Position numbers and translations under genes: made by a program | The notes under the pieces: model-generated | What the model was told of the DNA's origin: nothing | The model's database searches: none | What the model saw: the letters and a program-made list of their open reading frames with translations, nothing else | Shown here: in pieces, positions 10,303 through 55,358 of the stretch | How positions within the stretch are numbered: the stretch's first letter is position 1 | How the letters are laid out: each line of letters begins with the position of its first letter | NCBI GenBank assembly: GCA_040357565.1 | Contig: JBDODJ010000014.1 | Reading direction: 5' to 3' (one strand) | DNA length: 64,000 nt | Source: Cercozoa sp. M6MM | Taxonomy: Eukaryota > Protista > Endomyxa: Ascetosporea

Positions 10303-12208
10303 GGCGGGGGGGGGGGGGGTAAGTTCAGGCGTACCAGCTCTTGACGGGCAGGGCGCGCTGCATGCCGCCGCAGCGGTGCACGTACTGCATGGCGTCGGCG
10401 AATAGCAAGCCGAGCTTGATGTTGCACAGCAGCGGCACGCCGAAATCAATGGCGGCACGTCGAATCATGAAGCCTGACATGACAGCATACATATATATAT
10501 ATATATATATATAAATATTTTTAGATATATCGAGACAGGGGTACCATTGGTGACGGAGCGTCGCGTGAGACTCTCGGGCACGTTGATGACGAGGTCGATG
10601 GCGCCGCTCTTGAGCAGTGGCACCACGTCGGGAATCTCCTCTTGTGCCTGGTCGATCGAGGCATCCTCCGTCTCCGAAGACGAGGGATCGTCCTCCTTGC
10701 TCACACCCGCCGACATGGGCTTGCGCACCATGCCACACGGCACGTGGTGCCGCCGCAGGAAACTCGCCGTACCACGCGTGCCCACCAGCTTGTAGCCCAG
10801 ACTCTGGGGGGGGGGGGGTAAAGATGGTGGATGAGTGGGGACAAAGCTACCACAAGAGTCTGCGCAGCCGGCAGGAACTCGGCCACGGCGAGCGACGACA
10901 GCGTAACCAGCAACGTCGCGCCAGTGTGCGGTGCCGGAAGTTTCACGCCCTACACAGGAGGATAGGGGGGAGGGGGTAAACAGGGGGTAGGGGTACAGTG
11001 GACAGGATGGCCTTGAGGAAGGCCTCGTGCTTGTTGTCGCCCATGCAGGCCACCTCGCCCGTCGACGCCATCTCGACACGCAACGCCGGGTCGGCACCAC
11101 CTGTGGTAGGGGGTACAAAGAGTGGAGGGAGAGGGGTACAGACAACACACGCAAGCGGCCGAAAGAGAATGCCGGCGCCTTGACGCAGACAAAGTCGCGC
11201 TGCAGTCGGGGGGGGGGGGGGCAAAGGGGGGGGGGGGGGGGGGTAAAGCAGTCTACCTCGTCCAAATCGATCTTGTGTGGCACCACTGGAGTCTCCTTGG
11301 GCAGTACCTACAACAACCTTGTTTGAGATAGGCAGGCAGAGCGAACAAGCCTGTTCTACCATGGCACGCGTCGCCAGTGCAATGAAGTTCGCGTTGAGTG
11401 TTTTCGACACGAACGGGAACGAACGCGAGGCACGCAACTGCCGCACCACAAAGAGGTAGCGCGAGGGGGTAAGGGGGCTCAGGGGTATGGTAAAGTTACG
11501 TTGCACTCGATCACCTTGATCTCATTGTCACGCGACATCAACTGCGCGGGGAGGGGATAAAGGAGGTAGGAGTGGGGGGGGGGGGGTAAACTACCTGCAC
11601 ATTGAAGGGACCCGTGATCTTCAGTTCGCGCGCGATCTTGCGACACACGCGTTTCACGCGCTTCAGTGTCTGCGCACACATGTGACCGATCAGTCAGAGT
11701 GACCAGATCGATCAGAGTGACCACAGAGAAACACGTGCATATAGTACCTCGACATAAATCTTCTGCGCCGGCAGCACCAGCGTGGCATCACCAGAGTGCA
11801 CGCCCGCGTTCTCCACGTGCTCCGAGATGGCTGCCGGGGGGGGGGGGGGTAAAAAGATATAGGGAGGAGGNNNNNNNNNNNNNNNNNNNNNNNNNNNNNN
11901 NNNNNNNNNNNNNNNNNNNNNNNNNNNNNNNNNNNNNNNNNNNNNNNNNNNNNNNNNNNNNNNNNNNNNNATATATATATATATATATATAGTATCTACC
12001 GGGTCGGTGATGGCCTGCACGTAGCCGACCATGCCCGTGTTGAAGACAACCTCGCCGCTCACGGGCCGCACCGCGCCGAACGACTCACCCTGCTCACATC
12101 CTACATCGAGGGGGCGGCGCCCTAGGTATCGGAAGGCCCAACCTCAAACACGGTGCCATCGCGCAACTGCAGCTGGGCCGTTGCAGGCGATGTCTGCAAC
12201 TCGGCCAT
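10230..12208 (-). CDS. Carbamoyl-phosphate synthetase, fused small (glutaminase) + large subunit; most of the gene lies in the gap 11871-11970
   Basis: N-terminal [32 protein letters not shown] before the gap. After it: [59 protein letters not shown] domain [21 protein letters not shown], ending [14 protein letters not shown]. Confidence 0.9.
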
Positions 12209-25586: not shown

Positions 25587-26099
25587 GCGCGGTTGTAACT
25601 GGACACGTTTACCGGAGTAAAAAGAGCAAAGCAGCGGGCTCGCCTGAGTGAGCTCGAATTCTATCGAATCGTTCCCGGAGCATTGCTTGCATCTCGGCCA
25701 CCTCTTGGCCGACTTGGGCTTCCACTGCCAAGAACGCACAAAAAGGCGCGTTTTACGATTGGATACGTCAACTAACACTGGCTACCCTCATCGTTGAAAA
25801 CTTCGCGATGCTCATTGGCCAGCGCAGCCCGAATGAGCTAAGTATGCAAACATTGTTTCCAAAGCATGGACACAAACAAACAAAAAGTTGAAACCTCGGA
25901 GTGGTCGTCGGACGATGCAAAGTCTTCAGAAACCGGCATGACGTTTAGTTTTACGGCAAACTCTGCACCTCTCCACTCGTAGTACCAGTTTGAATCTGTT
26001 TTAGTACACAACGTCCAGTAGATACTGTACAGTAGCGCCATTCAAAAAACTCTTGGCTGTCCGGGGTAGCCAGAAAGCTGTACTAATAATTGGCGGCCG

Positions 26100-26142
26100 T
26101 CAACCAATAGAAACCAAGCCAAGGACCAATAGTTGGCTCATT
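26100..26142. promoter_or_regulatory. Clustered CCAAT boxes in the divergent intergenic region upstream of the chromo-HDAC gene
   Basis: caaCCAATag...gaCCAATagttggctcattg about 70-100 bp upstream of ATG 26208. Confidence 0.35.
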
Positions 26143-26207: not shown

Positions 26208-29200
26208 ATGGAGGACTTCGTGGTTGTGCTGTAAATCACTCTCTCAATATTATCTTTTCCAGCGCCGTTCATGGCGCATGCGTTTGCAGAAGCAGCGATA
26301 GCGAAGATGAAAGCAGTAGCGAAGAAACCAGTGTCTCTGATAAAGAGCGGTATACGACTGACCTATCACTGACCTTTTGTCCTGTGTGATGTGCTTTCAA
26401 ACGAGGTGCTGTTTCTGCTCTCAGGGGTGTGTCCGATCAGTCGACAGGGTCGCCAGCAGAGAGTTCCTCCGAAAGTCCTCGTGCCTTTGTTGTCGAATCC
26501 ATCGATGATCATCAGTGGACGGAGGATGGCTCGGTCGAGGTAGCGCCCTCGACATTGTTATGCACACCTTCCCTTGTGCTTGGCAGTCACCGCCCGCTTT
26601 TTTAAACTGTAGGTGTTTGTGCGTTGGGCGGGATACTCGCTGGACGAACGAACCTGGGAACCGCTGAACGAAGAAAACCGCAAGCTGCTCGTCTATCGTG
26701 ACTACTACAATTCTCGTGCTGTGCTTTCCCTCTCTTTTGCTTGTTCTTTTGGTGGACACCTTGAGAGTTTTCCTTCTTGGTAGAAACTCGACGTCAGACC
26801 ACTGCCGGAGCCTCTCACCCCGGACGAGGTTGACGACCTCGAGGAACTCCAAGACCTGGACAAGACCATCGAGGCAGTTTCCGTGGAGGCAACAGACGAC
26901 GACAAGACCATTGACGCCACGACCGTCGAAGCCACCGAAGACGAAGAAACCACTGTCACCTCCTTGAAGCAACAAGAACGACCAGTGCTGCTGCCCGTCG
27001 CTGTGTCGAAAAAACGCACACCAAAGAAGCGAACACCAAAAAAAGTCACCCCGAAAAAGCTCATGCCAGAGAAGACGGTTTCAGAAAAGGTCACGCCGAA
27101 GAAGATCACACCAAAGAAGATCACGCCGGAAAAGACTGCCGAAACACGACAAATGCCCAAGCCGCAAAAACCGGTGGCCGAAGTGAAGAAACGACCGCGC
27201 GGAAGGCCACGCAAGAATGCCGTCGCCGCCGTTGAGACGGCGAAGCCAAAGGCGCCCGCGCTGCGCGAACCTGAGCAAAAGCGTCGAAAGGTACAGCTCC
27301 AGTTGGCTCTTTGTGTTGTCTGTGTCTGTTGTCTCACTTGCTTTCATGTCCGCAGACACACCGAAAGACGAGTTTCCTGACGAACATCAAGTCCTTCCGG
27401 TGTGTCTCGCTCTACGGCATTGTTGTGTTTGTGTGTGACTCAACGTGTGCAGGCAAGCCAGAGGCAAGACAGTGGCGGCCAACTGCAAGCAATACGTAGA
27501 CTGTTCTTCCTGGCTTGCTTGTAAATCTTGTATAGCGTCTCTCTCTTTGCACAGTTACGTGACTCTATCGCACTGAAACGTCGACGCGCCTCACAACTGC
27601 GCGGTCACCGCGTAGCCATGAACATTCCCGGCGCAGTCTTTGGACCCGACGTTGGTACAGTTTTGTTGCTGTGCTTTCGGTGTTGTCTGTGGGTTGATTC
27701 AGTTGCTTTGTGTGTCTTGAATCGACTTGTCACAGGCCTGTCCATCCGAAGCGAGATCATGGCGGTGGCATACGACACGATGTGCGTGCTTAAGCGCTGC
27801 AGGAAGATCTGTACACAAGTTGTCCTTCTTATGGTAGTGTCATATGTATTGTTTGTTGATTTCTGTGTGTTTGTCGGCGCAGTGGAGGACCGGAAAAGGT
27901 TGCCGAACGAGCCAACGAAACGCAACTTTGTGTGGATGCTGATGGAGGTGCTTGAAGTGCTGCGGCGTGCGATCGACGTAGCCTCTGCACACACTCGCCC
28001 GCCTTGCTTTACCCCCACCTCACCCTCTTGTCTCTAGGTGGCAAGACGCACACAGTCGAACTTTGACCGAGTTCAGAACTTTGGCCTGCTGCACCAGTTT
28101 CTGGCCGTCTGCATCGTGCTTAATCGTATCCTGAGGGTTTTCTGTCTGACGGGGAGGGTACGGGGTAGAAGTGTCGATCGCATGCACCCTCAGACCTGTC
28201 GATGCCGAAGTGCGAGGTCGTGCACCAGATCCAACAGGAAGAGCTGGTGACTCAAATGTTCGGCGAGCCGGCCAAGTACGAGCACTTGGTGCATCTGGCA
28301 GGTACCTTTGCATACATGCACTATATCTATCTATATACTTATATATATATACTTATATATATATATTTTTTCAACTTTTTGTATACTGTGTCTACTCAGA
28401 GTCGGTGGTGTGCGCCGTGTCGATGGTGCAGCTGCTGGACGCGCTGAAGTGGCTGGACGTGCGCAAGCAGCTGTATGAGCTAAGCATGGACTTGAGTCTC
28501 AAGAATCTGCGCAACCTGCTGCCGCGCGGACGAACTCGCATGTGCCCTCTGCTTAGCCCTACCTGAGGTGGTGGCTAGTACAAAGCGTGTGCACATGTGA
28601 ACAGACAAGCCGCAGTGCGCGAGTGTATTTTGTCGACCATGGCGATCCAGAGGTACTCTCCTTGCTGCTGTTGTTGTTGCCTTGCAAGTACACTGAGGGT
28701 GTAATTGCAGCAATCAAGTGCGACTCCCCCTGTGTGTGATGGAACTGGATGACCTCAAGCAGTCGTTCGGCTTTTGCGTGCCCGAGTATAGCTACGGCGA
28801 CCTTATCGACAGCGACGATGACGACGACCAGTCTGACGACTCGTCCTCTGAGTCGTCCGATGATGACTCGGATAGCAACAGCAGAATGAGCAGTCTGAGT
28901 GACTCAAACGCTGCCGCTCTTGTCCAGTCGCTGATGATGGACTCGCCTGTCCCTGTCATGCAGTACTCGGTCCGTCTGTGCATCCTTCTGTGTTTATGTG
29001 TTCTCTCTCTCTTATTCAGTGTGCCTGCAGGGTCAGAACGAAAGATGTCGCAACGCAAACGTGTTTCGCTCAATTTTGGTGCCGTTTGTTGTCTTCCTTC
29101 CCTATGTGTGGTGGTTTGATGTCTACACAATGTCACAGAGCAAGAAAATATACGTCTACACTTTCGGCAAACGGAAATCGGACGCAAACAAGCTCATTCG

Positions 29201-29679
29201 ACTGTCGCTGGTGCGAACCTTTTCCACCATGATTCCCACATAGTAGCTTCCCTCTTACCCTTCTCCTTGCAGCCGTTCAACGACGAGGACTTTTTCGACA
29301 TGGCTCGCGCACTTGCGGCCGATAGGGTACTGCGCGCATGTCTCGTTGTGTGCCTTTATTGTGCGTATGTCTTTTCTTTGTCTATGTCACTATATTATTG
29401 TGGATTGTTTATCACGTGTTCACATGCAGAGAGAGCTAGGCCCGTTGGCAGTTGCCATTCTGCAGAACGCGAAACTGCGCGAGGAACTCGAACTTACGGG
29501 TTCGTTTCGACCCAGTGTCGCTGGAGGTGTCCTTTGCTTTCCTACCGAAGATATGTCTTGGCAGAGGAGGAGTGCCAGGTGGCATTGAGGCGGCACCAGT
29601 CGCACGGCGTTCCGCTGAGCGGTTTTCAGGTTTCAGTCGCTCTGGCTGCCGTGCCTCTGAGTGTACTATTTCACCTATC

Positions 29680-29740
<61 letters not shown>

Positions 29741-29760
29741 NNNNNNNNNNCACGTCTCTG

Positions 29761-29791
<31 letters not shown>

Positions 29792-31928
29792 GTTTTTGGA
29801 TTGAATGCAGCCTCCTGCGTCGGCCAACCAGCGTGTTGCCATCGTATCGCAGCAACATGGTACTTTTGTACTCCTTCGTCTTGTTTTGTACTGCCACCGG
29901 TGTTTGCAGTTCAAGGCGTCACACACAGCGAAGACAACGGCGTCGAGAACAGTGCGCGAATCGTACGTGTCCTCTTGTGCGTGTGCGTGTGCGTGTGTGT
30001 GTGTCTGCGTGTGTGTGTTGAAGCATACGTGAAAGCCTGTCTCTCTGCAGACGCGACTGATGCCGGCGATGCGCAAGCTCGCAGATCGCGCGCACGGCCG
30101 CTTTGAACTGCACGTATCAGATCGCGAGGCCTCGGACGAGCAGATGAAGTACGTGCACGACGACGCCTACGTCGAACACCTGCCCAAGAGTACAGTCAAG
30201 TCTACTTTAATATGGCTCCTATCCCCTTATAACTATACTACAGTCTGGTGGCTGGGCGGCTATGACGAAAAGAAGAACAGCAAGGAGGAGTCCGAGTGGA
30301 CGGAGCGCGTCAAGGCACTCATCGGCGACAGAGAAGTCCGGGAGGGCGAGATGCCCACTGTTGACCAGGTCGTCCGCTGCATTCGCAATGTAGTTTACCC
30401 CCAATCCCTCTATGCCTTGTGTCTTACCTATCAACCTTCTCCCATTTGGCAGGGTGCCGGTGCTGCCCTCGATGCACTCGACCTCGTGTGTCGCGACAAA
30501 GTTCGCAGGGCTTTTGGTAGCTTTGCTTTGTTGCCTGAGCTAGAGAAGAAGGCAGTATAAGGAATGGTCTGATGCAGCTTGCATTCGACCACCTGGACAC
30601 CACTGCGGTCGTTCGAGAATCTCATCTACCGAGCATGGCTGTATCCTTTCCTCCTTTAATCAATTTATCCTTTACCCTCTTACCCACTATGTTCTCATCC
30701 CTTCTCCCAGTCTGCTACGTAAACAACGCGGCACTAGTGGCTCGTTACGCTCAACTCACCTACGAGAATGTATGACAGTACTACTCGGGGCGGTTATGTC
30801 TCTATGAGTGTGTCTTGCGTAGGTGAGGAAAGTCGCCATCATCGACATCGACGCGCACCACGGCGATGTAGGGCTTGCCTTGTCCTCTATACCCATCTGT
30901 GTCCGCTGTCCTCTACCTCGCACCCATGTACTCTCCAGGGCACGGAAGAGATTTTCGAGGACGATCCGACCGTGCTGACGTTCTCGCTGCACCTGTCGGA
31001 ACGTGCCACTCCCGTGAGGAAAAACCGCCTGGCCGATTTTTCGTTCAACCGGAACTGCGCGGCACTGCGGGTAGTCTCTTTACCCCCCACTTACCCCCTC
31101 CCCACACTGCCACCTTTTTGCACAGTCCAAGAGAGAGTACAAGTACTGCGACACGGACCCGTCGTCACAGGTGCCGCCGAAACGACGCGTGCAGGACTGG
31201 CAGCCCGTGTGGAACGCCTTCTTTCCGTTCAAGTACCTTCTCTGCCCTCTGTGTATGGTGTAGATGCTGTAGGTAAACACTAAACCTACCTGGATTGTAC
31301 ACAGAGAGAACACGGTGTCACTCAACGATCGCTCACGCAACGCCGTGGTCGAACTCGACGTCTACACCGAGCCTGAGCAGTTTGTAAATTTGCACCTTTC
31401 CATCTGGGTATCCTTGCCTTATCCCACACCCACCCTTGGTAGTCGGAGCAGTGGATGACACGCTTCCGCGCGGAAATACTGCCGGCCACGCGGCAGTGCG
31501 CGCCCGACCTCATTGTGATCTCCCTCGGTCTGGACGCGCGTCGGCACGATGACGTAACCGAGGAAGCTCTTGGGTACTTATTTCTACCCTTTTAACCCCT
31601 GCCTTTTACGCCTACCTTTACCCCTCTTCTTCCTGGTAGTGAGCGTGGTCTAGAACCGAAGCATTACGCCAGTATGGTGGCTTCACTGTGCGCCGTGGCA
31701 CAGGTGCCTTGTTGTTAGACTGAACTCTTTGTCTGGCATGTATGTGTTTTTTTGTAGGACGTGTGTGACGGCAAGGTTCTCATGGTGCTTGAGGGAGGCT
31801 ACGGCGAGGTAGCCTTCTCTGCTCATAGGTTGCTTGGCCATGTAGTTACTTGCTTTCTTTTCCCGAGACAGGAAGGCATCGTGGAGTGCGCCGAGGCCGC
31901 CGTTCTCGCACTGGCCGTGCACGATTGA
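26208..31928 (+). CDS. Chromodomain / AT-hook / class II-like Zn-dependent histone deacetylase fusion protein
   Basis: Continuous GT-AG spliced ORF: MEDFVVVLSSDSEDE; chromodomain AFVVESIDDHQWTEDGSVE|VFVRWAGYSLDERTWEP; TPKK repeats; KKRPRGRPRK; HDAC motifs IRPPGHH, HGFCYVNN, DIDAHHGD|GTE, LTFSLH, ISLGLDA, VLEGGY; stop 31926-31928. Confidence 0.85.
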
Positions 31929-32691
31929 CAATGTTCACGTTCACTTTGCTGTAGTTTCCGTCTGATTCAGATTCTGCGCGTACTGTACATAGAGTATCGT
32001 TAGGTTCCCCCGTTGTTACTGGGGCTTAATGGCCGATGGTAATTGAGTTGGCGTAAAGAGAAGAAGAAGAGATCAGATTCCCTGGTCGAGAGAGCCCTTC
32101 TTTGAGTTCAGCTGCAAAAAGCTTGCTCAAGGCTTCCCTACTCAAACACAGGTGTTCCACAGTCTGGACTGAAGCTCAGTAGGTCATGATACCAGCGAAC
32201 ACATTTCAATATCTTCCACACCTCTCTTGAGGATTTTTGTAAGTTGCAGGGTTGCTTCCGCGAGGATAATGATGTTCGTTTTTACAGTGGTCTGTCTCTC
32301 TTTGTGTTACAGCATGAACCAGTTTGACAAGTCGACGCGACACAACGTAGGATGATGTGGGTGTTGATCGACGTCGTCGTTCAGTTCTTGTTGACTAAGT
32401 CAAGTCATTTCGCGTTGGAACTGAAGGTGACGAACAATTTTTAACTGTTCTCGGACCAGGCTTTGCCCAGGGCCGCTGCGTCTGCTACTTCTTGAAAGGA
32501 CGAACGCTTACAAAAAGAAAGACACCGTACGCCCATGCGCTTCGCTTAGTCGAGTCTTGTATGTACCATGCGCTTGTTACCCACCCCAGGATTGGTACAC
32601 AGGGAACTCCTGGTTTCTCAGCAGACGGAACTACTAGAACTACTAGTACACTGACAGGAAACCGGCGTGAAACTGGTGCCGTGGGATCTGT

Positions 32692-38021: not shown

Positions 38022-41000
38022 ATGTCGGGCATTGTGACTTTTGCCACCGATGTCGTTCTCTGGTGCCGCTTTACTCGGCATATATGGATTTTCTTGCGTG
38101 TGTCTTGATGTCGAATACTGTACAGGCCTACTGTGATGGGTGCGGCCATCGCGCGGCCTTCTCTTTCTTCAGTGGGTTGTCCATACCCCCCCCCCAGCCT
38201 CTTATGTATGTGTGGTATAGGCGCTGTACATGGCCATAACGGTGCTGTACTTTGCGTTCGGACGGCAACGAGGCGAGCCGAACTTTGTGGTGGTAGTGTC
38301 ACCCTTTCTATGTCTCTGTATGGTGCATGTGTCATGTGTCGGTGCCTGCAGTACAAGCGACGAGCCACGGAACCGGTGCCGACCTGGACTTGGGCACTCC
38401 TGTTGCTGGTCGCTTTGGGCACCTGCACGGCCCATGCCGTTCTGCAGACGCTCTACGCACTCGACGAAATGGGTAGACTCCTATCCCCCGTTATCACTCC
38501 CTGCATTGCCCTATTACCCTCGCTGCAGACGGTCCCAAGTCGAAAGATGACGTCCTATGGCAGCTTGGATACCTCCGCGTGGACGAGAGCAACTGGGCGG
38601 TACTACCTTCTCTGTGCAGTACCTGTGGAGACACGTGTCTGTGTGGCTGGTGAACAAGCTTGTTTGGGCAGAGAGTGCTCGTGCCGGACGTGGCCGTGGC
38701 CGTGGCGACGCTGCTGTTTTTCGCGCTGCAGCGCCGCTTCGTGCCGCGGCAGTACGACCGACTGTCTGGCGTGGACCAGCAGCCGCTCATGGGTACATGT
38801 GCCGTCTCTCTCTCAGTGTGCACGTGCCAGTGGGACACGTGCCAGTGGGACACGTGCTCATGTGGTACCTTGTAACTGAGGCAGGCAACGTGGCCGACCT
38901 CAAGCCGTGGCAAACCGATCTGTCGCGCTGGCGTCCGTCGCCATCCTTTTTGATCTCGGTACACATGACCACAGGTTTCAGAGTGATCGATCAGTCAATC
39001 GACCGGTTAGTCAGTGATCGATCAAAGTGACCACACTCTAAACTGGACAGGTGATGGCGCTGTTCTTTGCGGCTGCCGTGCTGTCGCCGCACGTGCTGTC
39101 GCTGCCCTTCTTTGCCGTCGTGTGGCCGCTGCTGATCCTGCGTAAGTTGCCACGTGTGTGCTGGGTGGCTGACTGACCACGTGGGTGGCTGACCACCTAG
39201 GTACCTGAGTGACTGACCACGTGCGCAGGCGCCGCGTGGCCCGACCTGCTGACGCGCGTGTCGACGCGCCGCGCGCAGTTCGCATTCGCCGGTGCTTTCG
39301 CCGTCTTCATCGTCGCGCACATGTATCCTCTGCCACGTGCTCACTCATTGATCATAGACTGGTCACTGAGTGGTCACTGCGATCATGAGTGACCACTCTG
39401 CTCTGTGTATGTTGTTGGTGTTGGTGTTGGCAGAGTCTTCTGGATGCTGACGCAGTTTCCCTTCTTCAACCAGGGCGTAGGCTTTGCCCCCTCCCCATTT
39501 ACCCTCTCCCCCGTTACCTTGTTGCCCCCCGTTGACTCCCGTTACCCCCTTTGACCTGGGCAGTTGTCGGGCCGGCAGGTGCGACTGCTGGGCGTGGTGA
39601 TGCTCTTCGACGACGACGCCGATCGCAACGGCGTAACCGTCACTCTCATTGCGACAGAACTCACTCCCTTAACCGCCACTCAGTTCGGTGAGACCACGTG
39701 TCTCTGTGTGTGCAGGAACCGTCGCGCACGGTGCCACTGGTGGCGCAGATCTGCGTCGAGGTTCTGCTGCTCGCCGTGCTGCTGCAGTGGCGGTATCTAC
39801 CCCCTCGCACGTGCCAACTAAGAGTGTGTGACATGTGCCCACTGAGAACACGTGGCAAGTGGGACACGTGCCAAGTGGGACACGGGCTAAGTGGGACACG
39901 TGCCAACTGAGAATGTACATGCGGATGTGCATGGTATAGGTATCACATGCGACCGCCGCGTCGCCGTCTGTTCGGACAGGTGTGCGACGAGGACGTGCCG
40001 ACCGATATTGTACTGTCCCGCTTAATTAAGTCTGCGTGGTCTCCCCTTTAACTAAGTCCAATGTGGACGGTACAGGTGGACCGCGAGGAGACGCTGCAGT
40101 CGCAGGTGCGCACTTTCGTCAAGAACACGCTCATCGAGCCTGGTAGGAGTTTTACCCCCCCCCACACACACACACACACACACACTTCTGTAATACCCCC
40201 CTCTTACCCCCTCTTACCCCCTCAGTAACATCGCTGGTGCGTGAGTACGGGTTTCGTGCCATCCAAGTCGCGCTGTTCGTGGTAACGTTTACCCCCCCCC
40301 AACTCCCATCTTACCCGTCTTACCCCCACCCATCTTACCCTCTGACCCCCCATACAGGTGTGCTTCGCGACTGACAGCGGACTCAGTCTCGGTCTCGTGC
40401 TGCTCTTGGTACTGTGAAACTTCATTTTACCCCTTTTACCCCCCTTTTACCCCTTTTACCCGCCTACTCTCGTGTTTGTGTTGGGCAGTTCGTGTCGATG
40501 TACCTGACGCAGAAGCAGTTCCGAAAGATCGTGCCGTTGCTGGTGCGTACACAATGTGTTTAAGGGGGTGCAACGAGGGTGGCTACAGGACATGGGTAGT
40601 TAAGGGAGCTGTCAGTAGTTAAGGGGGTTGTGTTTGTAGTTCATGTACGGTGCCGCCGTGGCTCTGGCGACGTTTCTGTTCGAGATGCCCGAGGTACTGT
40701 GACACAGACACGTGTGACCACCCACTGCTGAGGGACCACGTGACCACTGTGACCACTGTGAGTGACCACTGTGAGTGACCACGTGCTTGTGTGTACACAG
40801 GTGATCATTGGCGAGGCCGACAAGGACACGAAAAAGTACGAACTGCTCGAGAAACTCGGTCTGGAGCAGCGGTAGCGTTTATACCCCCCTGTTTACCCCC
40901 CCCCCCCNNNNNNNNNNNNNNNNNNNNNNNNNNNNNNNNNNNNNNNNNNNNNNNNNNNNNNNNNNNNNNNNNNNNNNNNNNNNNNNNNNNNNNNNNNNNN

Positions 41001-44000: not shown

Positions 44001-47000
44001 CGGCGTTCGACTATTTTGTGCGTTCTTTCCTGTTTGGTTAAGGCTGCGTTCTGGTCTGTTTAGTTAAGGCTGCGGTCTGTCTGTGCAGGCGTCCACTTTG
44101 TCCCTTAAGGGCTACCACTGCGAGGCAGACAATCCGGACAGGTACTGCGCCTACGACGACAAGGACTGGACGCTCGAAGATCTCGGACTCGTGCGCGCCT
44201 TTCCGATGCACCACGATGCCGATGGTAGCTTTACCCCCCCATACCCCCTTGTTTACCCCCACCCCCTACTCCCAGGTGGTTGGTCGCTGTTCGAGGTGCT
44301 GGTGGTGCCGATGTTCGTGGCGGTGCTGCTGGTGATGCGTTGGCGACACATGACTCCTGACACCCCTGTGAGTGACGGTGGTGTCACTGATCCCAGTGAC
44401 GGTACGACTGATCCCAGTGACGGTACGACTGATCTCAGTGACGGTGCCAGTGACGGGACCAGTAACGCTGCCAGTGACGGTGCCAGTGACAGTGCCAGTG
44501 AGGCACGTGCACCGTCGCGCGTGAGCTACGGACAGCGCTTTCTGCGGCGCGTGCGGCGTCGCGTGGCGCGTGTGCTGCAGCTGTCGGCGACGCACGCCAC
44601 GGCTCTGGCCGTCTTCGCCTTTGCCTCGGCTCGGTACGTCTGTACCTACTGAAGGGTCCATTTGTACCAGGTGGTCCACTTGTACCGTTTGCAATAATTG
44701 TTACACAAAACAGGAGTCACCTGGAGGGTCTGCTGGAGGTGACGCTCGTCGTGGCGCTCTACCTGGGCGCCGTGTCGCGTCGCGCCTTCCTGGTACCCTC
44801 TGCACGTGCCATGGTCACCTCGGTGGTCACCTAGGTGGTTACTTGGCTGGTCACTGGGTGGTCACTATGGCACGTGTGTAGTTGAAGTGCATGGCCTCGC
44901 TGTCGTCACTGGCACTGCTGGCGCAGTACACGCGCCAGGTGACGCCTCTGCGCGCCTTTAACAACAGGTGCCACTTCATTAAAGGGGTGTCGTTTGGTTA
45001 AGGGCGTGTTGTTGGGTTGGTTAAAGGGATGTGTATGTGGACACAGCTACCTGGACTGGTGCGGTCTGCGCGACTTTGCCTCCGAGTACTCCGCCTACGA
45101 GTCGTGGCTGCTGGTACCGCTGGGCACGTATGTGACTGGACTCTTCTGGGGGTCACTGGGTCACGTGGCTGACTGGCACGTGTTTGACTGGGTCATTGGG
45201 ACACTGGGACACGTGTGCGCAGGTCGGTACGGCGGCGGCGCTGGTGGTGACGACGGTGGCCACGGTGGCGACTCGCTGCGTCACTGCGGTCGTCGTTGAT
45301 CCCAGCAGCAATCAGAGTGATCGCGCCGATCACACCGTCGGCACTGATGACACCGTCAGTGACAGTGACACCGCTAGTAGTGGTAGTGACAGCGACACCG
45401 TCAGCGACACCGTCGACAGCAAGCACGTGGCGTCGACGCACGCCTCGATCAATCGCACGCACCGGTACACTCTGTCTGGCCATCTGGACCGACCTTATGG
45501 TCCATTTGGACCAACCCTGTGTGTACTGGAGTGACCCTGTGTAACCGTCCATCTGTACCGACCATGCCGTCCCGCTGTAGTGACCGCAAGCGACGCAGAC
45601 GAGTGAGTCAATTCACGCGCTACCTGCGCTACGTAGTGCGACACGCCGCGCACTTCTTTGGTACACCGCTCACGTGCCAGACACGACCAGTGTCTCAGTT
45701 GGCACGTGCCTCAGTTGGACATGAGTGCACTTGCTCCTGTGTGTGTGCAGGCATCGAACTGGCGCTGCTGACGGCACTGATTTGTGCTTTCTTCCGCAAC
45801 AACGCGCTGTCCTGGCTGTACTGCGAGTTTACCCCCACCCCATCCCTTTACTCCCACCCCCCTACCCCAGTTATTTCCGTTACCCCCTGTTACCCTCCCT
45901 CCATTACCCCCTACCTACTTACTCCCCCAGTTACGTCGGTATGACTGGCGTCTTTATTCTGCGAGGACGGCGTTCGCTGCGTCAGTTGTAGGGCTGCCCC
46001 TTTAACTCTGACTGTGTTGGTCCATTTGGACGATGGACTGGACTATGGACTGGACGGTGGACTGGCTACTGTGCAGACTGCCGACCATGGTGGTGGTGAC
46101 GGGACTGTCGCTGATCGGGCAGTTCTTCGTGTCGCTGCGAGACACGCCGTTCGAGTACCCGTGGCACGCCTGGGCCTCGCCGCTGGAGCGCGAGTGGCTG
46201 CTCCTGGATGGCTACAAAACCGGTACAATCCGTCCATATACTATATATATATATTATATATGCAATAGTAAGTATAGTATGTATATAATAATATAAATGT
46301 CTGTATCGATACAGGTGACCTGTGGTGGGACTACTTTGCCTTTTTGTTCGCCATTGCTGCCACCGGCGTACCGCGGCCTCCGGTACCTTGGCCTCGTCAA
46401 TTTGTACCTCGGGCATTTGTACATGTACAATTGGACAGGAGCCGCACGAGTTGTCCGAGGAGCAGAAGCGAGCGACGCAGCGGCTACTGCTCAGTTCGGT
46501 ACACACAGTTCCATCTGGACCGTGTCCCTTGTCCCGTGTCCATCTGGACCGTGTCTATTGTACCGCCCATTTGTACCGCCCATACTGAACGTATGTGTAC
46601 AGACGTCGGTGTCGCTAGTGCTGGTGTTCGTGGCGGCGCTGTGGAACGTCGACTTCCTGTCGCTGCTGTACCTGGGTCTAGGTACACCTGCCACGTGTCA
46701 CGTGTCACGTCTCTGGACTGAGTGACCCAGTGACCACCTGACTGAGTGACCCAGTGACCACCTGACTGAGTGACCCTGACTGAGTATGTATGTGTGTGCA
46801 CTGCAGCCATGTGGCTCCTGTTCGCCGAGTCGAGTCGCGCCAGGTGGGCCAAGGTGCACTGGTGCAACCTGCTCGTCCTCGTGCTCGGTACCTCTTGCTC
46901 CAGCGGTCACTTGACTGTGAGTGGTCAGTCTGACTGTGAGTGGTCACTCTGACTGTGAGTGGGCATTGAGAATGGGCACGTGTGTTTCTGTGTGGTCACA

Positions 47001-48784
47001 GCCACCGTGTTCCAGTTGCCGTGGATTCCGACGCCCGACCTCGTGGACCCTGTACTCGCACACTGTTGGGGATGTAAATAAGGGGTAAAGAGGGAAGTAA
47101 AGGTATGTTGTGTCGTGTGTGCAGGACCAGGAACTGTTCCGTGGCGCCGCTTGGAGTCGGTAAGTGCAGAGCTTACTGCCCTAGTTATTCTTACCCCCCC
47201 CCCCCCTACACCATCGGTGCAGAGTGATCGGACTGAACAAGTTCTTTGTGCGTTCGCTCCCACGTGACGAGCAGACACTGCGTGTCGACCCGTTTGGTAC
47301 CACCCTGGCATGTGTCCCTGGCACCAGTGCAGAGTGGTCCTTTCCCTCTGAGAGAAACGAGCTGACTGGTGACTCACTGGGGCAGGACCACGTGGCGTGT
47401 TGCACACGCTCGTCATCTTCGTCGTGGTCGATCTGCAGCTGCGACTGCTGCAGTCGACGTGAGTTTTTACCCCCCTCTTGACCCCCTTGACCCCCTCCCT
47501 TTGACCCCCTCCTATCCCTCTTACTCCGACAGGAGTGCCCGACGTGCCATCCAGCAGGAGAGAGATGACATGCGGTATCGTACCCTCCCTTAACCCCCCT
47601 ATCAAATGTGTGTTTGTGTGTGTGTGTGTAGCAATAGTCCCGTACGCGCGGTCATGTCGACTTTGCTGGCCAATGTACCTTGCTTCTTTTACCCCCCTGC
47701 CCCTTTGCCCTTTCCCCTTTCCTCTTTGCCGTCTACCCCGTTACTTTACCCCTTTACCCCTTACCCCGTTATTCCTTCACCCTTTATCCCTTGCCCCTTT
47801 ACCTCTCTACAGCACGAGCGACGTCGACGACAGGCGGCTCAAATCTCGGCGAAACGTCGCATTTTGGCCGTATCTCTTCTGTTTTGTATTTGCTGTGTGT
47901 GTGTGTGTTTTTTTGTTTGTTTATTTTCTGTTGTTGTTGTTTTGTGTCCTTGTATTAGTTGTGTTTTTTTTTGTGTCCTTGTTTTTGTATTTTGTTGTTG
48001 TTTGTTGTTTTCTCTTCTCACCTGACCCTGCTGTAGGAACTGCGCGCACTGCTGCACACGGGCGACGGTAGTTTTCTCGTTCCCACTGGGGCACCGGTCG
48101 TGTCACCAAGCACGTGCTGACTGAGCGTGCTGACTGAGTGACTGAGCACTTGCTGGCTGAGCACATGCACTGTGTGTAACACGTGCGCAGGCGACAAGCA
48201 GGTGGTCGAGTCACTCGGCATTGCTAAACTCAAGTTCAACGACCGCGAGCTATGGCCGGTGCTGCTCTTTCCTACTGTTATTCTTGAGTCTGACTTAGAG
48301 GGCAGATCCGCGAGGAGTACGTCCGCGCGGACGAAAACGCACGGCACAAGCGAAACGCAAGCGCTGTCATTTTGCAAAGCGAGGACGACATCGCGCGTGT
48401 CGAGACGGCCGAACTCAGCGTTGGCGCTTCCAACGGCGCTGCGAGTGGTTAACCCCCCCCCCCCCTACCTTCCTCTGACCTTCCTTTGACCTTCCTCTTA
48501 CCCTTACCCTCGCTTACCTCCAGAGGAGTACGAACATTGGTCGGACAAGGCGGCGCATGTCGACGTCGACGCCGACGGTCGCATTGTCGCCTGCAACGAC
48601 AAGTTCGCCAGTAAGCTTATCTATCTGTCTTTATCTTATCTCTGTGTATAGTTAGTATACTACCGAACACATGGATGTCTGTGTGCTTTTTAGAGATGGT
48701 GGGAGTCACTGGCGAAGCGGTAGCATATGCTCTGCACCGTCTGTATGTGTCTGTGTGTCTGTGTGTCTGTGTGTGTGTGTGTGT

Positions 48785-51877: not shown

Positions 51878-54800
51878 GTAGCTTCGGCTACGCCGCTATG
51901 ACGGCACCTGCGACGAACTGTACCTTCCTTACCCCCTTGCCTCTTTAGCCCTTACCCCTTACCCCTGTACCCTCCTGATCGCAGCGAGCACGACCGATGC
52001 TCTAGCGCAGAGTCGTTTTTCGGTACCCCCCTCCCCGTACGTATGAGGTGTGAAACGTGTGCACATGGACAGGGTGGCATGGTTCTGTTCCTGTTCCTGC
52101 ACATTGCCGTCATGGTGTGCGAGCGGTACCTTTTACCTCCCCCTGCCCCGACCCCTGCCCCTCTCCTTACTTCTCTTTCCCCTTACCCCGTACCCCGTAC
52201 CCCGTAGATGGATCTTCCTGCGCAAGTCGCTGGTGGGCAAGACGCTACTGACGGTCTTGACTTTCGTGCTGTTCGCCTCGCTGAGTGTGCTGTCCTGGCC
52301 GGCGTAGGCTCTTCTATCTGTGTGTCCGCGCGGACGGGAACAGATACAATATTATCTGTGCAGTCGCTCGCGTCGACCGCTCTCGCAGAACGGAACCGCG
52401 CAGTTCTTCTTCTTCCTCAAGTTGCTCTACTGGTGGGTTTGCCCCCTCGTTACCCTCCCTTTTACCCCCCCCCCCCCCCTCAACCCACGCAGGACGGTGT
52501 CGCTGTGGCAGCTGCGTGACGGTTACGTTCTGTTCGATCCGCATCGGTAGTTCCCTTTACACCTTCAGTGGGCACGTGTGTGACCGAGTGTATCTGGGCA
52601 GCGATCGTATCACGCGCGGCTTTTCGACGGTGCGCAATGTGGTGTTCATCGCGTACCGCGCGCTGCCCTTCGTGTTCGAGTTGCGCACTCTGCTGGTACA
52701 CTTGGACTGCCTAGTTTCTAGGTGGCAGTAGGTAGTAAAGGCAGGTACTGAGGGGCAGGTGCTGAGAGTATGTCTGTGGTGTGACTGGACAGGACTGGGT
52801 GGCGATGGACACGACACTGGACCTGTGGGAGACCTTCAAGTTAGAGGACGTCTTCGCGTCGATCTACTCGTACACTCACTGACCACGTGGCCAACCAAGT
52901 GAGTGACCACCTGGGCAGGGTCAAGTGCGGTCTGCAGGGTCAAAATCCCGTCGACGACGAGCTGCCGCGCAAGCGGTACAGTTCCTTTGCCCCATTTACC
53001 TCCCTGACCCCATACCCCCCCCCCCCGGACAGAGGCCAGATCCAGACGCAGGTGACCAAGTACACCAACGGCGTGCTCGTGTTCGCCGCACTCATGACGC
53101 TGCTGCTTGGTAGACACGCACTACTGACCACTGGCCACGTGACCACCCACTCCATGTGACAATCGATGTGACCACTCGGTGTGCAGGCCCGCTACTGCTG
53201 TTCAGCACGGCGAACCCTGCGCAGCACGTGAACCCAGTACCCTCCTTTTATCTCATTACCCTCCTTTTACCCCTTACCCTCCTTTTACCCCTTACCCTCC
53301 TTTTACCCCTTCCCCTCCTTTTACCCCCCCCCCCCCTCCGACAGGTGCGAAGCGCGCGCCTGCAGGTTGACATCATCGATCTCAAGCAGTCCTCGCAGGT
53401 CGAGTTGCTGCGCATCTCGTCTGGTACAAACCAGCCTGTCTCCCTCTGTCCATATGGACGGAGTCTGTCCTGGCCCGTGTGTCCATTTGAACCGTTGCTG
53501 GTGTGTAGCCACTCTGATTCGCGAAGCCACGACGGCCGAGAGTTCGCTGCTAGGACGCTATGTACCTTCTTCCTATCTCACTTGACACGTGTCTTTTGTG
53601 TGTGTGACCGCTGGAGTGACCACTTTTGGCACGTGTGTGACCACTGGAGTGACCACTTGGCACGTGAGCAGCACTCGCTGAGTGGTGACAAGCCGGCCTC
53701 GATTCAGCGCACGCAGCTCGTGCAGTCTGACGAGTCGCTTTGGACGGTGCCTTTTACCCCCCCCCCCCCCGTCCTCTTTACCCACCCCCCTCCATGTGAC
53801 AGGTGGCACCGCCAGCACGTGCCGCACTGCTAAACGGTCTTCGAGGCGACGCTGGCGTAGGCTTGCCCCCCCCCCCCATCTTTGCCCTATTGTGTATACT
53901 CGCAGAACGGCATCGATGAGAGCAAGCCGCGACTGCGCTGGACGGTATTTTTCTACTCTTTTCGAGAAAGTAAGAGGGGTAAAATGGGGGGGGGGGGGAG
54001 ATATACATGCAACACAGCTGGCCTTCACGCGCGAGGAACCGGTCGGTTTCGAGACGGTGGACACGCAGGTCGAAATGACGCAGCCTCTGAGTGCCGCGCA
54101 GCGACTTGCACTGGCCGACGTTATCGATCAGGCGCAGACACATGTACCCTCCCTCAGTCAGACAGTCAGTGACCACGTGTATCTCAGTTGGCACGTGTGC
54201 AATCACTGTGTTTGTGTGAGTGACTGCAGGTGCAGGACACGCTGCTGCCTCTGCGCGACGGCAGCGACTGCGACGAGCGGACCGCCTTGCCGCCTGCTGG
54301 TACCTTTGGTCACAGTGGGCACGTGCCAACTGACCCCCAGTTAGCACGTGCCAATGCCCTCACTGATACATACACTCGCAGGCTCGACGTCGGAGAGTGC
54401 GTGGCCGCTGTGGTTCCGACTGCCGGCACATGGCGAACCGTCGCTGCTGACTGCCGGTACACATTTGCACTTGGGTGAACACGTGTCTGTTGGTACCAAG
54501 AGAGACACGTGCGCGCAGGCACTCCGGTGCGGTGCCTACGACTGCGTCTGCAGACTGATGCTGTCGTACCCTCTTGTTCTTACAGGGGTTAAGATGGGGT
54601 AATCAGATGGGGTCACTGTGGTCAGTCGCGTGGTGAGTATTGGACACTTGCGGATGCGTCGACCAGTACAGGCGTTAGTTTCCTGACGGTACCAGTGTGA
54701 TCAATAACTCTGACTGGGTGACCATCCCAAGTGAACACCTTCTGTAGGTGTCGAACGAGGTGCTGTCGTCGTCGCTGTTCGGACTGGCCAACCTCGACGT

Positions 54801-55358
54801 GATCACGCTGTACGTCACCGTTGTTCTCACCGTTGGCCGCTTCCTGCGACAGATGGTGCGTTCACCCTACCTCTTACCCCCTCCCATCCCTTACCACTCT
54901 TGGTGTAGGTGGCGGAGAAGCTGCACCAGATCGTATACGAGGACGTCATGAATGCCGACTTTATCTTCCGTCTGTGCATGGGTTCCTTACATACATAGAT
55001 ATGATATATTATATATATATATGTATATGTGTTAACTCTATGTGCACGGGCAGGCATCTACCTGGCACGCGCTCAACGCGAGTTCCTGCAAGAAGAGCAC
55101 CATTTCCGCATTCTGATTCGCATCTACCGCGACCCGACTCTGCTGCTGCTGCTCACGCGGCGTCGCGACGGCGCAGGTGCCTTACCCTCTTGATATCTCA
55201 TATCTAAACATCCAATGTATCTATATATATTTATATTAGCAGAAGAAGACACGCGCTTCGACGACGCCGACAGCGCCTCGTCGACGGCTGTGCTGTCGAC
55301 GAGTGCTGCCGCCTCGGCCCAACAGCATGACGAGGACTCCAAGAGCGACGACGAATGA
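38022..55358 (+). CDS. PIEZO: Piezo-type mechanosensitive ion channel with inserted ankyrin repeats and PAS-like domain
   Basis: Repeated 4-TM blade units; anchor motif PFVFELRTLL|DWVAMDTTLDLWETFKLEDV (PFEW); outer helix GPLLLFSTANP; inner helix ITLYVTVVLTVGRFLR; CTD GIYLARAQREFLQEEHHFRILIRIYRDPTLLLLLT; stop 55356-55358. Confidence 0.93.
48745..48920. repeat. Imperfect (GT)n repeat in a Piezo intron inside the PAS-coding region
   Basis: Direct inspection. Confidence 0.9.
51216..51876. repeat. Three (GT)n / (GTGTCT)n microsatellites in nearby Piezo introns
   Basis: 51216-51330, 51555-51695, 51811-51876. Confidence 0.9.

Follow-up and report, generated by a model that had tools for sequence, protein, structure and literature searches.

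A predicted chromodomain–AT-hook–class II deacetylase fusion in Cercozoa sp. M6MM

The coupling of histone methylation reading to histone acetylation erasure is central to heterochromatin maintenance, and in model organisms this coupling is carried out by multisubunit complexes. The SHREC complex of S. pombe contains the Clr3 deacetylase along with Clr1, Clr2 and Mit1, and is recruited via the HP1 protein Chp2, and the HCHC complex of Neurospora consists of HP1, CDP-2, HDA-1 and the AT-hook protein CHAP. Both complexes couple reading and erasing through separate subunits that are held together by protein contacts. The locus described here occupies positions 26208-31928 (plus strand) of a 64,000-nucleotide (nt) stretch of contig JBDODJ010000014.1 from Cercozoa sp. 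M6MM (assembly GCA_040357565.1; this entire stretch is the window referred to below). Like SHREC and HCHC, this locus combines a predicted methyl-H3 chromodomain reader, an AT-hook (as in CHAP) and a likely class II deacetylase of the HDA1/Clr3 type; unlike in these complexes, where the activities belong to separate subunits, here they are found on one predicted chain. It is reasonably probable that the locus is a single gene of about 35 exons encoding a chromodomain-AT-hook-deacetylase fusion of approximately 1,130 residues.

The genome that was searched is a 23.6-Mb eukaryotic assembly of 2,235 contigs, with short, very densely spaced GT-AG introns. The exons of the locus were rebuilt by hand from the sequence and then searched singly against Pfam and solved structures. 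Codon bookkeeping over the exon coordinates reveals a chain of 34-35 exons that are connected by GT-AG at every junction and comprise 1127-1147 codons, with the sole stop codon at 31926-31928, in agreement with the original prediction of an uninterrupted GT-AG frame. The non-coding intervals within the chain are 50-181 nt long and fall within the range of 36-218 nt for the introns of this genome. All three domains are encoded on the plus strand and fit one open spliced frame, but two-gene readings are equally compatible with the frame. What the sequence shows directly is the domains, the catalytic residues, the open frame and, for the exons upstream of an assembly gap within the locus, both coding character and reading frame; splicing across the gap and production of the fusion protein are what we infer. 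The prediction of a single polypeptide thus stands in part: the open frame and codon statistics are in its favor, whereas the weak linking splice sites and the legality of the separate open reading frames (ORFs) are not.

Six exons match Pfam family PF00850 (Hist_deacetyl) colinearly, at positions 13-49, 107-119, 142-155, 156-177, 210-248 and 270-284. The scores of these pieces are 15.7, 11.6, 19.3, 17.6, 24.0 and 11.4 bits, so that none of the six reaches the cut-off of 27.9 bits singly, whereas simple addition gives about 100 bits. The sequence motifs P-P-G-H-H in exon 30578-30640 (the His-His dyad), D-I-D-A-H-H-G-D in 30823-30867, G-L-D-A in 31443-31573 (the third Zn ligand) and G-G-Y in 31758-31808 (the catalytic Tyr) are all readable in the exon translations, as previously noted for PPGHH, DxH, GLDA and GGY. 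The domain thus retains the His-His dyad, all three Zn ligands (Asp, His, Asp), the Asp residues of the charge relay and the catalytic Tyr, and the same set of residues (the dyad, the D-x-H and D ligands, the charge-relay Asp and the Tyr) is found in HDAC6, HDA1 and the class IIa enzymes. The best solved relatives of two exons are HDAC6 (E-values 1e-5 and 4e-4), followed by HDAC7, HDA1 and HDAC4, and then by the bacterial HDAH/APAH proteins; the HDAC6 alignments include the G-L-D-A exon. All 14 introns of this part are GT-AG, 50-88 nt long, with A or G in donor position +3. To judge from these alignments and motifs, the domain is likely a class II deacetylase of the HDA1/HDAC6 type with all catalytic residues present.

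There are nevertheless clear differences from HDAC6, HDA1 and the class IIa enzymes, namely, some 50 extra residues inserted past the S-L-H motif (in exons 30939-31232) and the replacement of the usual F-Y-P-G-T-G loop by F-F-P-F; in addition, the ubiquitin-binding zinc finger and the class IIa N-terminal adaptor region are missing at this locus. A phmmer search started with the stop-free segment 30033-30557, a 175-residue N-terminal piece, yields no matches among 1.8 billion representative sequences, and the deacetylase domain is accordingly very divergent. A scan of metagenome contigs detects no relative, and a search of the ESM Atlas yields only clusters of short Hist_deacetyl fragments, with scores not exceeding 0.85. 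Genome-wide Pfam scans for deacetylases and chromodomains miss this locus because its exons are too short, though other loci are found. These include at least seven other Hist_deacetyl loci (contigs C1690, C1, C457, C297, C1716, C1595 and C2) and three other Chromo loci (contigs C56, C345 and C54); the deacetylase segments on C1716 belong to an open frame of 480 residues that has few introns, if any.

The chromodomain is split between two exons. The second exon, 26613-26720, matches positions 20-36 of Pfam Chromo (PF00385) with an E-value of 1.4e-4 and a score of 22.1 bits (cut-off 25.1), and is similar to at least 30 solved chromodomains (E-values 0.005-1), the leading matches being Oxpecker, MPP8, HP1, Rhino, CDYL and SUV39H1 (E-values 0.005-0.1). 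As in the HP1/MPP8/CDYL-type chromodomains, this exon aligns to the W-x-G-Y ... T-W-E-P core, and three aromatic residues are present: the W and Y align with the cage W and Y of MPP8 and HP1, and the F, which belongs to the first exon, was placed only by eye. All three had been named in the original prediction. The difference from the HP1/MPP8/CDYL-type proteins is that the locus lacks a chromo-shadow domain and that the first half of the chromodomain, 26425-26539, gives no match with any tool when searched alone. Genome scans for Pre-SET and Chromo_shadow are blank as well, which is uninformative because genes in this genome are split into exons.

The long exon downstream of the chromodomain ends with an AT-hook (residues 136-147, approximately 27189-27224; core P-R-G-R-P-R-K) that is detected by Pfam AT_hook (PF02178) with an E-value of 0.009 and a score of 16.2 bits, slightly below the cut-off of 17.4, at the place where the AT-hook was claimed earlier. 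Together with half of the Chromo model, the six colinear Hist_deacetyl pieces and the readable motifs, this match supports the earlier assignment of three domains with the catalytic residues. The exons of the following middle region have no match to any Pfam family but display a strong frame-specific codon signal (+15 to +53 bits compared to introns), GTA or GTG donors and introns of 53-98 nt; the C-terminal end of this region is an Asp/Ser-rich acidic tract. The coordinates of all features are given in Table 1.

Table 1. Features of the predicted fusion locus (positions in the window).
Feature	Coordinates	Strand	Basis
First coding exon (probable; start position, ATG 26208, provisional)	26208-26230	+	First ATG after two ACCAATAG boxes
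Acidic/Ser-rich exon, possibly optional	26263-26349	+	Frame kept in chain
Chromodomain, two exons (26425-26539, 26613-26720) and intron 26540-26612	26425-26720	+	Pfam Chromo, solved chromodomains
Exon of 507 nt with an acidic linker, a Lys/Pro/Thr-rich array of six T-P-K/E-K repeats resembling a histone H1 tail, and one AT-hook	26784-27290	+	Pfam AT_hook, translation
Orphan middle region, ~450 residues	27356-28962	+	Codon statistics
Middle region, first five exons	27356-27399, 27453-27495, 27555-27654, 27736-27810, 27883-27977	+	
Middle region, last five exons	28038-28115, 28169-28301, 28400-28541, (28605-28652), 28711-28962	+	
Weakest internal link of the chain	28963-29138	+	Each frame-preserving solution has one poor signal
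Four coding exons, ~95 orphan residues (29139-29210, 29273-29326, 29430-29499/29514, 29565-29629/29650)	29139-29650	+	
Putative linking intron (acceptor 29810; donor GTGCCT at 29651 or GTTTCA at 29630)	29651-29810	+	Phase, sole AG
Class II-type histone deacetylase (likely), 15 exons, stop 31926-31928	29811-31928	+	Pfam Hist_deacetyl, solved relatives
Deacetylase exons 1-5	29811-29859, 29910-29962, 30051-30189, 30244-30389, 30453-30516	+	
Deacetylase exons 6-10	30578-30640, 30711-30769, 30823-30867, 30939-31070, 31126-31232	+	
Deacetylase exons 11-15	31305-31383, 31443-31573, 31640-31703, 31758-31808, 31872-31928	+	

Whether the two halves of the locus form one gene depends on the exons that precede the gap and on the gap itself. 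Codon models were trained on approximately 2,600 codons, taken from the locus itself and from the long plus strand gene at 38-57 kb. Because the training set includes exons of the locus as well as ab initio ones, the likelihood ratios are rough: for the four pre-gap exons, these are +21, +17.3, +18.6 and +12.2 bits against introns, and +15.9, +11.3, +13.2 and +9.4 bits for the frame used against the off-frames. The last of these values refer to the segment 29567-29629, with a third-position GC content (GC3) of 0.81 and the own frame compared to the other two. Of the open 63-nt windows in the flanking non-coding sequence, only 2.7% score as well as this segment, compared to 72% of in-frame exon windows. 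The coding signal fades out near 29629, and the frame of this last exon is open up to the gap. The frame that leads to the stop at 29586, by contrast, has the score of an off-frame (-13.1 bits); its putative tail scores -2.2 bits. If the exon 29567-29629 is real, the visible sequence therefore lets the upstream gene end only by splicing into the deacetylase.

The putative linking intron is composed of (CA)n, the 10-N gap (29741-29750), (CT)n and (TA)n. The only AG past the gap, at 29809-10, is the acceptor of deacetylase exon 1 and is in phase with the donors 29630 and 29651; given that these donors and the acceptor 29810 all fall at codon boundaries, the frame is independent of the unread gap length. 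The 10-N gaps of the window (at 2667, 9300, 14182, 29741, 51262 and 51618) are located inside di- or oligonucleotide microsatellites, with an identical repeat unit on both flanks in four of the five others, and a (CA)n run extends up to the gap at 29741-29750, its last letters reappearing on the other side. The unread part is thus probably just more repeat. The 100-N gaps, at 11871, 33981 and 40908, adjoin long G or C homopolymers, and this rule (10 N for a microsatellite, 100 N for a homopolymer) helps to judge gap-spanning findings in this genome. As a homology control across other gaps, Piezo was sought on both sides, and only the Piezo cap at 54739-55160 was found.

Splice sites were scored with matrices derived from 107 introns. 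Donor position +3 is A or G in all 39 homology-supported (HSP70, CCT) and clear locus introns, and is T in four and C in two of the 86 ab initio introns of the neighboring gene. With exon ends at 29514 and 29650, a donor +3 other than A or G occurs in one of 34 introns of the chain, within the expectation from a genome rate of roughly 0-7%. The idea that both linking introns require GTT donors (0 of 39) was rejected: in-phase GTG donors are available at 29515, 29527 and 29651, which weakens the donor argument against the fusion. A dynamic-programming ab initio parser developed for this work fuses everything into one gene under any settings and for this reason was not used to choose between one gene and two.

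A single gene is favored by the codon evidence, the lack of a visible stop, the agreement of phase, the nature of the gap and the lack of intergenic room. Confidence is held down by the weak signals, the ATG at 29805, the coincidence of the domain boundary with the junction and the negative searches for transcripts and relatives given below, and a number of specific observations weigh against the fusion. The splice sites of the link score poorly, in the lowest 10-25% of the introns of this genome, with donor 29651 at the 15th percentile, donor 29630 at the 2nd and acceptor 29810 at the 10th, and the donors 29500, 29515 and 29527 are at the 1st to 11th percentiles. If the interval 29499-29565 (candidate donors 29500, 29515 and 29527; acceptor 29564) remains unspliced, the upstream ORF has 725 residues and stops at 29586. 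No other non-coding stretch of the locus is as long as the linking interval, which includes unread sequence; an in-frame ATG at 29805 immediately follows a TGA at 29802 and precedes deacetylase exon 1 by two codons; and translation from this ATG gives a deacetylase of 414 residues, a normal size, with the domain beginning within about 10 residues. The junction 28963-29138 has no clean solution and requires a GTT or GTC donor, and the codon ratios are rough, as mentioned above. The sequencing runs searched include one DNA run and no RNA runs for the locus, and no annotated protein or relative is found among the 1.8 billion representatives or the metagenome contigs.

The weak linking sites, the ATG and the long interval with its unread bases also fit an alternative, two adjacent same-strand genes that are split at the microsatellite and gap, one encoding a chromo/AT-hook protein of approximately 725-750 residues and the other one the 414-residue deacetylase, in which case the chain described originally would rest on chance GT...AG pairs. 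Both ORFs are legal, with the stop at 29586 and the start at 29805, the deacetylase domain starts right at this ATG and has the size of a stand-alone enzyme, and published Hist_deacetyl orthogroups lack Chromo. This arrangement is nonetheless rather unlikely, given that the sole visible upstream stop belongs to the frame with the off-frame score and the poorly scoring tail, whereas the alternative frame scores as coding (+12.2 and +9.4 bits) and is open to the gap. Moreover, the 3' untranslated region of the first gene and the promoter and 5' untranslated region of the second one would have to fit into about 216 nt plus the repeat between the stop and the ATG, and the visible interval contains no intergenic motif of the TACTGTACA type, copies of which flank the locus (at 26023 and 31981) but do not occur inside. 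Another in-frame ATG precedes the acceptor of exon 29139 by 9 nt, which shows that such codons occur by chance here; ATG 29805 might be equally fortuitous, might be left over from a formerly separate gene or might serve as a genuine alternative start.

A break at the junction 28963-29138 is very unlikely. In that case, the chromo/AT-hook gene would end at TGA 29117, a stop that the upstream frame does reach, and the deacetylase would carry a 95-residue N-terminal extension starting from ATG 29130, which is in frame before exon 29139-29210. This junction is the worst one in the chain: the donor 29063 (GTT, -2.0 bits) scores lower than that of every training intron, and the acceptor 29138 is at the 7th percentile. 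These two sites are used in the first of three frame-preserving solutions, 28963 to 29019 plus 29063 to 29138; the second one, 28970 (GTC) to 29030, involves a 61-nt intron followed by a long exon, 29031-29210, and the third one connects 28970 to 29138. The in-frame alternative from 28970 to 29030, with its strong acceptor (9.7 bits), is the best option. Furthermore, the stop and the ATG are separated by 10 nt, compared to hundreds of bases in other intergenic spaces nearby, which leaves no space for untranslated regions or a promoter and makes a gene boundary unlikely at this position.

Least probable of all is a scaffolding artefact, whereby the flanks of the gap are not true neighbors or several hundred unique bases that include a stop, intergenic sequence and a promoter are hidden between them: although the gap is unread, its length is merely estimated and no second contig covers the region (DNA searches of the assembly detect one copy of the locus and no haplotig that spans the gap), the same repeat unit flanks four of the five other 10-N gaps and the (CA)n letters reappear across this one, a pattern of unresolved repeat length rather than of joined unrelated contigs, and both strand and codon phase agree across the gap.

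At the 5' end of the favored single gene, the probable first coding exon (GC3 0.86, +9.7 bits in-frame versus off-frame) can be spliced in frame to 26263, which would remove a 32-nt intron (26231-26262) that is below the length of any supported intron here, or to 26425, which would remove a 194-nt intron (26231-26424). The exon 26263-26349 has weak codon statistics (GC3 0.43, +2.4 bits) and, because the first exon can also be spliced in frame directly to 26425, may be skipped or may not be an exon at all. Two copies of the CCAAT-box-like ACCAATAG, at 26103-26110 and 26125-26132, are located 80-105 nt upstream of ATG 26208; these are the only copies in the window, and the pair is a plausible core promoter of the locus.

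A strand-specific map of intron composition assigns plus strand genes to 26-32 kb and minus strand genes to either side, so that the upstream neighbor is head-to-head and the downstream neighbor tail-to-tail with the locus. Farther downstream, Pfam Piezo_cap matches two exons at 54739-55160 (E-values 3e-6 and 3e-5), which confirms a plus strand gene for a Piezo-type channel. The 9-mer TACTGTACA has 36 sites with at most one mismatch in comparison with 13.8 expected, a number that is reached in none of 100 shuffles; the sites include 26023-26034 (a perfect 12-nt palindrome), 31981-31989, 2397, 20123, 38116, 59673, 61265 and 61514. These sites cluster at gene-strand changes, in both promoter-side and 3'-side spacers, and are depleted in gene bodies. 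A role as a 3'-end signal was rejected, given that the motif is also present in a head-to-head promoter region, so that it is not simply a poly(A) signal. Another motif, GTTT(T)ACCCC, is located a few bases past the donor in many introns (30390-30410, 31071-31100, 40143-40165, 45818-45840 and 47459-47480), and its GTT is easily taken for a donor under a flat donor model.

If the fusion protein is produced, its HP1/MPP8-type chromodomain would dock on methylated H3 tails, the AT-hook and the H1-like T-P-K-K array would grip AT-rich linker DNA, and the tethered deacetylase would thus be set on neighboring nucleosomes, keeping methylated chromatin hypoacetylated. The histone-mark specificity and deacetylase activity are predictions, and the proposed specificity for H3K9/K27 and a role as a heterochromatin silencer are conjectural. 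The gene might have originated by fusion of two neighboring genes, a scenario that fits the long microsatellite-filled intron, the relic-like ATG 29805 and the position of the domain six residues past the junction; the locus may even represent a single-chain fusion caught soon after the two neighbors fused.

Such a protein would indicate that the coupling of methyl reading to acetyl erasing can be hard-wired on one chain, would offer a minimal system for studying read-erase spreading in vitro, and would add Chromo+deacetylase to the catalogue of protist chromatin-enzyme fusions. If there are two genes, an ordinary deacetylase here has an ordinary chromodomain protein for a neighbor, and the locus warns against chaining exons over a gene boundary where introns are dense.

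In the eukaryote-wide survey of Grau-Bove et al. (2022), the readers that co-occur with catalytic domains are mostly PHD, Chromo and Bromo. The orthogroup table of that survey includes no Hist_deacetyl group with Chromo in the consensus architecture, the only reader fusion of Hist_deacetyl being a single-gene PHD,Hist_deacetyl group. A non-exhaustive literature search found no description of a chromodomain-deacetylase fusion. Judging from the sequence, it is marginally probable that the locus is a true single gene combining a reader, an AT-hook/H1-like clamp and an active class II deacetylase, that is, a one-polypeptide counterpart of SHREC and HCHC without an entry in the published eukaryote-wide orthogroup catalogue. 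The deacetylase exons match the solved HDA1 and Clr3 chains weakly (E-values 0.05-0.6), and, unlike these complexes, the locus lacks an Arb2-type C-terminal domain, a chromo-shadow domain and a part corresponding to the Mit1-type remodeller. As in SUV39 (Chromo+SET) and CHD (Chromo+SNF2), a histone-mark reader and a chromatin enzyme would be present on the same chain; thus, if real, the locus is a fresh variation on a known reader-enzyme design principle rather than a new kind of system.

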